This document shows, piece by piece, positions 35,099-63,571 of a stretch of 64,000 nt of DNA (position 1 is the stretch's first letter; each line of letters opens with the position of its first letter). Both the position numbers and the translations under genes were made by a program. The notes beneath the pieces were generated by a model, which saw only the letters and a program-made list of their open reading frames with translations, was not told the DNA's origin and ran no database searches. The stretch comes from Magallana gigas (taxonomy: Eukaryota): NCBI RefSeq assembly GCF_963853765.1, contig NC_088859.1, forward strand, positions 49,104,001 through 49,168,000. The letters run 5' to 3'.

Positions 35099-38000
35099 TC
35101 AAAATGGTCTCCCTGGTGTGTAATACTTATAAGTCACATTAACAAAGCCCGGTTGAACCCCCTGTTCCTGGGGATGAGGCACCATGCCCACTGAGGGCTG
35201 CGGCTGAGGAATGATGTTTGGATTTGGATGTGGCATCATGCTGGGTCCAGAATTTCTCTGGGGAACGGACATCATGGGGTAAGGCATGCTTACAGAGGGA
35301 TTACTCAGCCGACCATCTTGAAACATCACTGATTGCTGCACTGGCATGTCTTGAACATTGCCTGGATTCAGCCTCTCATTGCCGCTGCCAAATGAAGTGC
35401 TCATTCTCGTCTGTGGCATGGAAGCACCCTGAACTGAGTAGCCTGTCCCATTACCCCAAGCCCCAGGACCTTTGCTGTCAGTTTTCATGGAAAGTGCAGG
35501 TTGATTTGGTTGATAATCACCTCCTAAGTATGGAAAAATTCACATTAATTTCAAAATTAAACAATTTATGTAAATTTAAAATTTAAATTACTGTAAAGTT
35601 GATTTAAAACATCTGAAAATGCATGTACTATTACCTGCTCTAACATTAGACGAAGAGTTGCGTCCCCTCTGTGACCAGGTTGACTGTGTGTTGCTGCCTG
35701 GGTAATTTCCCTCCACTGGTCCCCTGTCCCCCGATGACCCACTGTAACCGCCCTGGTCTCGATTGGAGGGTGTTGTCTTCCCGTACCCAGCATTCCTCCA
35801 CAGATCATCAGTAGAGCGACCCTTCGAAACATCCTTCCTCTCTGTAGTCAATTTACTTTTATTTGAAACCTCTGGCGATTTGTAAGAGTCTCGTTTACTA
35901 GAAGACTTGTATTCAACATAGTCTTTTTTTGCACGACCTTTATTTCTATCGTGACTACGACCTTGATCTATGCCTTTGCTGTATCCATGGTTGCTGCTGG
36001 ATTCCATCTCCCTGCCATAGCCATGACTGTTACCTGAACCATGACCTTTTGTGTACGAGGTCCCTCTTGTTTCCCCCTTGTTGTCATTTCTTGGACGATT
36101 GTAATTGCTGTTGGTTTTACTTGTATGTGGATTTTGAACTTCACGGTTTCTGTTGTGATTATTCAGGGAATCATGATATCGATCATGGTCACGCCTATAA
36201 TCACTTTTGCTGCGTTCATATCCACTTGGGGCTGAAGAGTTACTGATTCGATCATACTGATCATTGTCAAACTTTCTGTACACAGTAACAGTTCTTTCCC
36301 CCGCAAACTTGTTGTATCTTTCTCTTTCATCATAGTCAGTCTGATCTTTGGAGTAGGCAATTTCACGGTGCTCCAGATACACCTCCCTTTGGTCGTCCGT
36401 GCGGTTGAAGTTTCGTCGTGGGTGGTCAGTGGATTGATAGTTATCATAACCTCTGTCCGATCTGAAGTAAAGTAAACCAGTTTAGCAAATTTAGTATCAA
36501 AAGATTTAGATATTATAGAATTTCTACAAAAAACATGTATATTTTTATGTATGTACATTTCCATTTGGGGGTACACTGTGTATGAATATTTATGGTTTGT
36601 ATAGTTAAAAAGTATTGCTTGCAACAAAAATAAAAGATTTAACCACTACTTCATAAATCATTATTTATTGTAGAGAATTTAGGATCCAAGATTTTTTGTG
36701 AAGACTTACTGAGAGCTGTATCTGTTTTCTGACATGTTTTGTCTCTTGACTTGGGCTGGGTAGTCCTCTCGGTGACCTCTGGGTTCGTAGGATCTCTTCA
36801 GGGATTCCCGCCTAATTCGGTCATGTTCTTCTTTTTCAAGTCTTTAAATAGGGTGAAAATTAATTATAACAGTAGATGTATTTCATATATTTTATATAAC
36901 AAATGATGACATAAGTTATACGCATTTTCTTTGCCATTATAAATTTAACACATCATAAAAAGTTTAAATAGAGATGACCGCAGGTACATGTAGACTTACC
37001 TCAATTCTTCTTTGATTTTATTTTCTTTTATTCGTATTTCTTCATTCTCCCTCTCCAGTTGTTTGACTCGCTCTGCCAGTTCGAGTTTTTCTTTTTCCTG
37101 AGCCTCCTTCTCCTTCTCCAGCCTGAGCCTTTCCTGTCGCTCCTTTTCTAGCTTTTCCCGGTCTCGCCTCTCTTGTTCTTTCATTTCCCGCTCCAGTCGT
37201 TCCCTCTCCCGCCTCTCCTGATCCAGTCTTTCTCTCTCCCGCCTCTCCTGTTCCTTACGCTCTCTTTCTTGTCTCTCCCTCTCTAGCTGCTCTTGTCTTT
37301 CCTTCTCCCTTTTCTCTCTATCTCTTCTTTCCCTTTCCTGACGTTCTCTTTCTTTCCTATTTAAAAACAAAATATATTCTGTATTCTCAACATATGCCAA
37401 TAATCCAAAGAGATATCTATTATGACATACTGATGTACATTTGCCCAGCTGTTGCATGTTCATGTATTTGTATGGATTATTTGTAGGTAGAATCCCTTTT
37501 AGAAATTTCTCTCTAAGAACTGTACTCTTGTATGCCCTCTGGGCCAAAAATTGGAAATAAAACTATTATTATTAAATGTAAAGACTAGTAAAAACTTCTG
37601 CTCTATACCTCTGCTTTTCCCGTTCTCGCTCTTCTTTCTTCCTGGCTTCGTACCGCTCTGCACTGTGTCTGTCTCTGTGCTTCCTATCTTCATGATGTGC
37701 CTGATATCCTCTCCCCTCATCTCTATGCTGGCCCCGAGGCCTGTCATCTGGGGAATTCCCTGGTTCCCTAAACCTGTCTCCATCCTGAGGAGACCATCTG
37801 TTATCAACAAACCTGTCCTGCTCATTGTATCTAAAGAAGGAAGACAGCCATCAAGCTTTTTATGTCCATTTTATGTAGTAGCCTGGATATTAATCTGAAC
37901 ACAATTAAAACATTAAATTTACTTACACTGGCTCTATGAACCTCATTCTTTCTTCTTCCCTGATCCTCATTTCTTCCGCAACTAAACGCCTTTGCTCTTC

Positions 38001-62600: not shown

Positions 62601-63571
62601 ACGGTACTTCTTGGGCCTCAGTTTTGATCGCCACATCAAGACTAGGTGTAGACTGAGCAGATGCTACAGAAATTCAATTCATTAAAATTTTTATGACTGA
62701 ACACAATGACATCATTTGTAAATGTCCTGATATAGAATGGAACATGTGATTTGTGGGCACGGGATAAAGACCATTGATTTTCTACAAGCTTATTTATTTT
62801 AATTCATAAACATCCCAATATTCCCCCTTTTGAAACTGTCTACTTTAAACAAGATAACAAGAAGTGTTAAAAGCATCCCAAAAATCAACAGGGTTCTGAC
62901 ATCTGTGTCTCTCAACAATGTAGTAAATCCGGTTTATGTCACTGAAGTGTAGTTATCAATCTTCTGTTTGGAATACTTGAAAAGTCAGTGTAAAATCTTG
63001 GTGTAGAATTACTTCTTTGTGTAGTTTCTTCCAGTTTTAATTCTTCTTTTACTTATAGAATGACTTTAATATCATTAGGATTACTTCTTCATGGATTCCT
63101 CATTTTTTGGCAAACATACAAACAAGTATCACTTCTGTTAGAAAAACAATCAAGGGACTTCCATGCATGATGATCATCAAACAGCTTCATAATTAAAAGT
63201 TTTCTTTCCAGAGTCCAGAGAGTTCAGTCCATTTTGTACAGCAGAAGGATCCATCACTTGGAATAATGTTTATAAAATGAAAATCCATAGTTTGTCGTCT
63301 CATGACTTTGTGCAGCTGATCATGACTTTGACAGGCTTAAGTCCAGTATCAACACAAAACCTCCTCTACACAATTACTTAACCTATATAAACCCCTAAAC
63401 AGGTGCTGTATTTGTAAATCATTGTTACACTTTACCTGAAGCAGTTACTATACCTTTGTTGTCTGTTGTTTGACTTGTTTCTACAGAGATATCCCCCTTT
63501 GTTACAGTCACATTGATAGAAATCTCAGTTTGGTCCACATGCATTACATTTTTCTCAACTTTTTCAGCTTC
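56690..63571 (-). CDS. SAFB: Scaffold attachment factor B homolog, 5'-partial (903 aa in window; SAP-coding 5' exons presumably beyond position 64000)
   Basis: Exons 63571-63454, 62663-62099, 61599-61565, 61479-61385, 61125-60976, 60845-60731, 60640-60488, 60348-60161, 60062-59899, 59669-59541, 59062-58919, 58526-58317, 58220-58075, 57313-57161, 57036-56690 (2712 nt, phases consistent). RRM: [27 protein letters not shown]|[23 protein letters not shown]. Also LSFDKIK and the C-terminal [15 protein letters not shown]. Confidence 0.9.

Follow-up and report, generated by a model that had tools for sequence, protein, structure and literature searches.

Does an invertebrate make do with one SAFB gene, and if a second copy exists, what kind of gene is it? 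SAFB and the fly Saf-B bind purine-rich RNA and suppress transposons, and the family has been portrayed as a defence against transposon exonisation that is pattern-guided and works at the RNA level; three SAFB proteins are reported for mammals and a single orthologue for invertebrates (PMC10901741). The question is raised by 64,000 nucleotides of the Magallana gigas genome (contig NC_088859.1, positions 49,104,001 to 49,168,000; hereafter the window, numbered from its first letter), in which two genes of the SAFB family, A and B, lie head-to-tail on the minus strand, with A upstream at the higher coordinates and B downstream. A literature search returned no paper tying SAFB to Crassostrea. The explanation that we consider likely is that B is an old tandem SAFB duplicate of bivalve-line origin, with no detected SAP domain, held under constraint, and that it would serve as a chromatin-untethered RNA-processing partner of SAFB.

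Two SAFB-family genes in tandem

Gene models were obtained with a home-made chain finder that scores splice sites and codons, and were corrected by eye and by scallop-guided tblastn. Database searches were run exon by exon; the joined models entered only local frame checks, alignments, trees and estimates of omega (dN/dS, the ratio of non-synonymous to synonymous substitution rates). All SAFB-like coding pieces of the window lie on the minus strand (Table 1), and a 5.1-kb spacer separates the stop codon of A (56690) from the predicted start of B, an ATG in a short exon (51613-51572). The 4272-nt open frame that a preliminary description, made from the letters of the window, had assigned to B is indeed kept: the 17 GT-AG exons sum to this length, contain a single terminal stop codon (TGA, 35099-35101) and encode 1423 amino acids.

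The same description had proposed that the two same-strand genes share intron positions and phases, and 11 of the 16 introns of B match introns of A in both respects. Either gene presents, in the same order, a large exon of phase 1 to 2 ending AAAAG/gt, a 35-nt exon, a first RRM exon and a second RRM exon (RRM2, phase 0 to 0). Downstream the phases run 1, 1, 0, 2, 2 in both genes, and then 2 after the exon with the KR.Y[DE] block. The RRM is split at the same phase-0 point, after KYGK in A and after KHVK in B. The 35-nt exon had been called identical, which holds for its length and phase but not for its sequence. In exon-level blastp, exons 9, 10 and 11 of A pair with exons 10, 11 and 15 of B (E=8e-9, 4e-8 and 1.6e-9, respectively). 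The 11 shared introns and the position of B in the SAFB tree (see below) show that it descends from a SAFB gene. B is a genuine tandem paralog, intact and strongly diverged; a tandem head-to-tail duplication of a SAFB gene produced it, and the parental exon-intron skeleton was kept.

The extent of the divergence is clearest in the RRM. Alignment to A gives 18 identical residues out of 27 in the first half, as previously counted, about 47% identity in the second half and about 55% over the whole domain, whereas canonical SAFB RRMs are 85-94% identical across phyla. RNP1 reads SCFGYIIL in B versus RCYGFVTM in canonical proteins, and the RRM of B is two residues longer at its end, finishing ...TFDK. 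Pfam RRM_1 matches both RRM halves of A but only the second of B, whose first half is unscored. The best library matches to RRM2 of B include SAFBs of many phyla, beside multi-RRM proteins with inflated summed scores, and a PDB sequence search with the two RRM2 exons returned generic RRM proteins only, with no SAFB RRM chain among them.

Like canonical metazoan SAFBs (human SAFB1 and SAFB2, Drosophila Saf-B, mollusc SAFBs such as the Mizuhopecten 'scaffold attachment factor B2-like' protein), B has a central SAFB-type RRM after an acidic ...VDDTQ.DLDAD... motif and, C-terminal of the RRM, a Glu/Arg-rich (ER-rich) coiled coil and a KR.Y[DE] block. Unlike them, it carries three extra ER-rich exons, an in-frame KGSKIISLKSKSNE repeat and a new tail. 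A single 827-nt exon of B replaces several exons of A, and the tail of B ends VNVTYKYYTPGRPF rather than in the Gly/Arg-rich sequence with a RFDAYK...RRY end that A has, as do scallop, unionid, cuttlefish and copepod proteins. The C-terminal tails of A and B share no significant similarity, which bears out the earlier remark that they are barely alignable.

The remaining difference from canonical SAFBs concerns the N-terminal SAP (SAF-A/B, Acinus, PIAS) DNA-binding box of the family, which was not found in B. Between 49000 and 56690, no SAP-like coding sequence was detected by a pattern scan or by tblastn with a SAP sequence, and tblastn queries taken from eight SAFBs of molluscs and nemerteans (the N-terminal 140 residues of each) likewise found none in this interval. 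A Pfam search with exon 3 of B gave no match. In about 13 kb of contigs upstream of a distant orthologue of B (L003 and L004, upstream of L002), the large exon of B is present and neither a SAP exon nor an A-like gene was seen, although introns are longer in that genome. B is predicted to encode a SAFB-derived protein with no detectable SAP domain.

Gene A is the canonical SAFB orthologue. Its in-window coding sequence (2730 nt, stop codon 56690-56692) is colinear with residues 251-1204 of the scallop (Mizuhopecten) SAFB, taking in the VDDTQNDLD motif, RRM2 (94% identical), TVVMDK..GEPVV, LSFDKI, the ER-rich exons, KRPYD and the EPRFDAYK...RRY end, and its RRM is 93% identical to those of bivalve SAFBs. 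The 5' end of A, including the SAP-coding part, lies beyond the window edge (64000), and the SAP domain of A is thus outside the DNA tested.

Transcription and constraint

To measure RNA from B we used the share of sampled 31-mers of 35099-40300, a segment with 12 predicted exons (6-17), that occurs in sequencing runs. With all 12 exons in and all introns out, the expected share is 0.553. The observed share was 0.55-0.57 in five runs recorded as RNA (three studies) and 0.54-0.56 in nine probable RNA runs (seven further studies), as against 0.92-0.97 in four likely DNA runs. Since the share in RNA equals the spliced expectation, these data support a spliced B transcript covering exons 6-17. B is therefore present in RNA at the share of a spliced message, and absence of transcription, which the preliminary description had held to speak against its proposal, is not what we observe.

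Constraint on the encoded protein was assessed in two other species. A contig of a congener (L006), found via the tail exon, aligns colinearly to 39098-34849, with 89-91% of nucleotides identical. Divergence is 5.4% in exons and 10.1% in introns, and gap bases number 0 in 2593 exon positions versus 50 in 1199 intron positions. No stop interrupts the frame, and the congener keeps both the TGA stop and all GT/AG sites of exons 10-17. Over 864 codons, dS=0.20, dN=0.022 and omega=0.11, with values for single exons from 0 to 0.43; the three B-only ER-rich exons are kept in the congener, at dN/dS of 0.035-0.43. In the other, more distant species (species 2; contigs L001 and L005, whose two source runs have adjacent accession numbers) synonymous sites are saturated (dS about 1.5). 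Omega is 0.03 for the RRM and 0.26 for exon 3, falling to 0.10 in the motif part of that exon.

The low omega, the lack of exonic indels and stops and the kept splice sites indicate that B is a constrained protein-coding gene that is not evolving fast at present, and one on which purifying selection has acted ever since the oyster species diverged. The earlier label of a fast-evolving duplicate does not fit the values for the congener as a whole or for the RRM of species 2; the divergence of B from A was early, on the stem of the B clade.

These observations make it highly improbable that B is decaying or non-coding, with a long frame that is an artefact of the model. Such a gene might have weak acceptors, like those of exons 10, 11, 12 and 15 (AAG/), 5' exons with no RNA support and a first RRM half that Pfam leaves unscored. 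However, a 4272-nt frame over 17 GT-AG exons is not a chance product, and the confinement of gaps to introns, the omega of the congener comparison, the conserved splice sites of exons 10-17 and the spliced-size share in RNA all argue against decay.

Orthologues and origin of B

The exon-level searches matched open reading frames from Logan and ENA assemblies, with no named oyster protein among the matches. Orthologues of B thus exist, at increasing degrees of divergence, in at least four taxa besides the oyster of the window. Matches to RRM2 are 87% (P0004 and P0006), 74-78% (P0003) and 57-58% (P0043/P0157) identical. Those to the tail exon are 95% (P0312), 63% (P0313) and 54% (P0314) identical and have strongly conserved blocks in common, such as KGRSTDDLWRNAGYGK; the motifs of the tail that are conserved among oysters include this one and GNYPGSNTQSTWSQRGRNSS. 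The reading frame orthologous to exon 3 (P0001, from a cluster of 39 members) is 48% identical. In species 2, where L005 adds to the evidence for an orthologue, identity over the first RRM half reaches 97%, and in the L002 lineage it is 92%. Signatures otherwise specific to B (DVYVDD, TRANDLKALFNK and FDK) recur in the orthologues.

A locus from a distant species, the P0157 contig (L002-L004), combines a large exon containing ESVDVYVDDEQNDLDADL, a first RRM half 92% identical to that of B and with B-only states (GI.SSTRANDLKALFNK.VKV), and coiled-coil exons with the B-only REWEEQ; its RRM2 ends ...SFDK as in B and is elsewhere nearer to canonical SAFB. The RRM intron on L002 measures 8.2 kb, versus 3.7 kb in the window. 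The same locus holds, downstream of the RRM2 exon, a 727-aa reverse-transcriptase reading frame (RVT_1; L002 12640-14823).

The duplication is old, because B orthologues occur in several other taxa. Its description as lineage-specific stands in the sense of a lineage-restricted paralog, but B is not private to the oyster species. We consider it unlikely that B is instead young, specific to the species or genus and still fast-evolving, for instance through transposon conflict or a role in the germline. A gene of that kind would account for the very long stem of B in the RRM tree (0.43+0.35 versus about 0.03-0.06 for canonical SAFBs), for exon 3 being only 48% identical between two oyster species and for a species-specific array of 50 decoy units in the RRM intron. 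It does not account for orthologues in at least four other taxa, one of them distant enough for dS to be saturated, nor for present omega values of 0.11 overall and 0.03 in the RRM, with no exon above 0.43. Neither a germline role nor a conflict with transposons finds support in these results.

The old duplication then has to be placed in the SAFB tree. A phylogeny of the RRM recovers a solid B clade (100/99) but cannot by itself say where the clade belongs. A global MAFFT alignment of full-length proteins misaligned B at the DDTQ motif and the coiled coil, after which we adopted an alignment of five exon-anchored blocks with 209 kept columns (the DDTQ motif, the RRM, two coiled-coil exons and the KRPYD exon). 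In the resulting tree the B clade (100/100) groups with oyster A and the scallop and unionid SAFBs at 84/95. A position of B as the sister group of all bivalve SAFBs is also compatible with the data (approximately unbiased (AU) test, p=0.40). B shares ESLDV.VDDTQ with all bivalve SAFBs, where cephalopods have ESLIV, and has D[VL]H[MI]KQR in common with oyster A and scallop only. A duplication on the bivalve line, after the split from cephalopods and gastropods, is favoured by this evidence, though not proven.

Cephalopods also carry a second SAFB on the contig of the canonical gene, in Octopus bimaculoides (XP_014784461.2) and Acanthosepion pharaonis (an 851-aa protein). These genes resemble B in an altered RRM end and in a SAP that is lost or degenerate, and there are superficially similar RRM changes such as T-K-x-N, so that B and these paralogs might all go back to one ancient molluscan duplication. 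We regard that as scarcely credible. The cephalopod paralogs fall within the SAFBs of cephalopods (92/88 in the RRM-only tree, 100/99 with five blocks) and keep ESLIV, the cuttlefish protein keeps RFDAYK...RRY, and a topology that unites B with the cuttlefish paralog is rejected (delta log-likelihood (lnL) 68, AU p=6e-6). The T-K-x-N of the B in the window is convergent, since the other B orthologues retain the ancestral TEL/TEY there. The trees thus mark the cephalopod second SAFBs as parallel events that arose within cephalopods, and not as orthologues of B. In the octopus pair (P0158 / P0117) the second SAFB has no SAP and carries its ESLIV..DD..DLDADL motif twice; in the cuttlefish pair (P0225 / P0196) the SAP of the second protein is degenerate. 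Two RRMs are present in the canonical cuttlefish model (P0196), which is probably the result of an annotation fusion or an exon duplication.

Vertebrate SLTM resembles B as a diverged third family member beside canonical SAFB, and some invertebrate paralogs, the 851-aa Acanthosepion protein among them, are labelled 'SAFB-like transcription modulator' in databases. If B were the orthologue of SLTM, the duplication would predate the protostome-deuterostome split and most invertebrates would later have lost the copy. This grouping was tested by proxy, as attachment of B at the protostome-vertebrate split in a tree data set assembled without a vertebrate SLTM sequence, and the AU test fails to reject it (p=0.056). 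Against it stand the best tree, which nests B among bivalve SAFBs, the bivalve-type ESLDV.VDDTQ and D[VL]H[MI]KQR of B, and its tandem position and common exon skeleton with A. SLTM also retains its SAP domain (PMC10901741), unlike B, and the published count of one SAFB in invertebrates (PMC10901741) implies that SLTM arose on the vertebrate side. We therefore judge orthology with SLTM to be improbable, and an origin of B before the protostome-vertebrate split is marginally disfavoured by the trees. B and SLTM are most likely independent paralogs; the independence from the vertebrate expansion that had been suggested at the outset is upheld by the five-block tree and by the rejected cuttlefish union, and is likewise favoured rather than proven.

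Predicted role of B and features of its locus

What might an old, constrained SAFB without a detected SAP domain do? B probably still binds RNA via its RRM, because the aromatic positions of RNP1 and RNP2 are kept. Many surface and core substitutions, among them the change from RCYGFVTM to SCFGYIIL, and the two-residue longer end suggest that its RNA specificity is altered. As the family-typical ER-rich region is enlarged by three exons, association of B with A or with itself is plausible, and the longer coiled coil probably lets B form pairs or oligomers, either with canonical SAFB or with further copies of B. Without SAP it would be unlikely to bind scaffold or matrix DNA directly, and lacking SAP-mediated DNA binding B would act as a chromatin-untethered partner or modulator of SAFB-type control of RNA processing.

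Several points weigh against this reading. The RNA support is a word share over exons 6-17 and not a junction-by-junction count, and it does not extend to the three 5' exons, among them the one with the ATG at 51613. The RRM-only tree leaves the attachment of B unplaced, and AU tests on it are uninformative. In the five-block analysis, moving B to or outside the protostome-vertebrate split costs 10.7 lnL units, short of formal rejection; the blocks of B were aligned pairwise to A, which may slightly favour a bivalve placement, and the comparators do not include vertebrate SLTM. The RNA binding, the pairing with A and the lack of DNA binding are predictions from domain content alone.

With these points weighed, an old and constrained duplicate with a role beside SAFB remains the explanation we prefer. 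The oyster keeps a second SAFB-derived gene with a remodelled RRM, a larger ER-rich region, a new tail and SAP undetected, and B may offer a natural separation-of-function variant in which RNA binding and oligomerisation occur without SAP-mediated binding to DNA or scaffold. The locus amends the picture of one SAFB per invertebrate, a modest find that concerns the expansion of a family and not a new system. Other exceptions to the single copy are the second SAFBs of octopus and cuttlefish and a tandem pair in the salmon louse, Lepeophtheirus salmonis. The louse pair is, like B, an invertebrate tandem duplicate, but both of its copies keep SAP and the C-terminal motif. It is represented by a 1613-aa 'low quality' model (P0005, XP_071746959.1) in which two complete SAFB genes are fused, each with SAP, RRM and a DRYDAYK end.

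Second SAFBs with lost or degenerate SAP might have arisen repeatedly by local duplication, in oysters or bivalves and in cephalopods, each fixed by purifying selection, as if there were a recurring need for an untethered SAFB partner; we offer this as a speculation that is rather doubtful at present. If it were true, the untethered partner might modulate or antagonise canonical SAFB on transposon-derived or giant exons, possibly in certain tissues such as the germline.

Table 1. Positions of the SAFB-family genes, their exons and associated repeats in the window
Feature	Position	Strand	Remarks
Gene A, canonical SAFB orthologue	56690..63571	-	15 in-window exons, one terminal stop, all GT-AG
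A large exon, phase 1 to 2, ends AAAAG/gt	62099..62663	-	gene model and scallop alignment
A 35-nt exon, phase 2 to 1	61565..61599	-	gene model
A first RRM half	61385..61479	-	Pfam RRM_1
A second RRM half	60976..61125	-	Pfam RRM_1 E=1.1e-6; 94% identical to scallop
A-B intergenic region	51614..56689	.	SAP-like coding remnant looked for, none found
Gene B, diverged SAFB paralog	35099..51613	-	17 exons, all introns GT-AG, single terminal stop
B exons 1-6	51613-51572, 51239-51140, 48944-48155, 44145-44111, 43956-43871, 40218-40063	-	
B exons 7-12	39904-39844, 39604-39389, 39288-38840, 38660-38536, 38389-38273, 38058-37927	-	
B exons 13-17	37830-37609, 37356-37000, 36841-36710, 36461-35635, 35523-35099	-	
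B exon 3, large, phase 1-2, ends AAAAG/gt	48155..48944	-	ESLDVYVDDTQDDLDADI motif and S/G/K-rich region
B 35-nt exon, phase 2 to 1	44111..44145	-	gene model
B first RRM half (RNP2, NLWVSGI...KHVK), ends phase 0	43871..43956	-	alignment to A
B second RRM half (RNP1, SCFGYIIL), 52 aa, phase 0 to 0	40063..40218	-	Pfam RRM_1 E=1.6e-6
Three B-only phase-2/phase-2 ER-rich exons (12-14)	37000..38058	-	lengthen coiled-coil region
B-specific C-terminal tail, exons 16-17	35099..36461	-	N/S/R/D/Y-rich, then Q/P/M-rich
Array of 41-nt unit, about 50 copies, in B RRM intron (40219-43870)	41237..43242	-	copies acceptor and first RRM2 exon bases
In-frame 42-nt coding repeat, 5 copies, in B exon 9 (KGSKIISLKSKSNE)	39045..39253	-	

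The array in the RRM intron of B contains 26 exact TTGTTGTAGGTGGT motifs. The orthologous intron of species 2 (L005 1354-1904) is 551 nt long and has no array, so the expansion is lineage-specific. In a third species (P0003) the RRM2 exon has a local tandem duplication of its end (...SLHKTELNKSTISVTFDKV RKSSLHKTELNNSTISITFDKV...), which mirrors on the donor side the acceptor-side decoys in the window. In place of the 42-nt coding repeat of exon 9, species 2 has a 21-nt repeat just downstream of its RRM2 exon (L005 2168-2323). A further tandem repeat, of 24 nt in 16 copies (50038-50410), lies in the intron between exons 2 and 3 of B and gives rise to long spurious frames (EELKNIYTE...).

The window as a whole contains 0 N and is AT-rich, with a GC content of about 31-39% per 2-kb window. 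At 4516-6600 (minus strand) it also holds a single-exon open reading frame of 694 amino acids with a HECT-like C-terminus.

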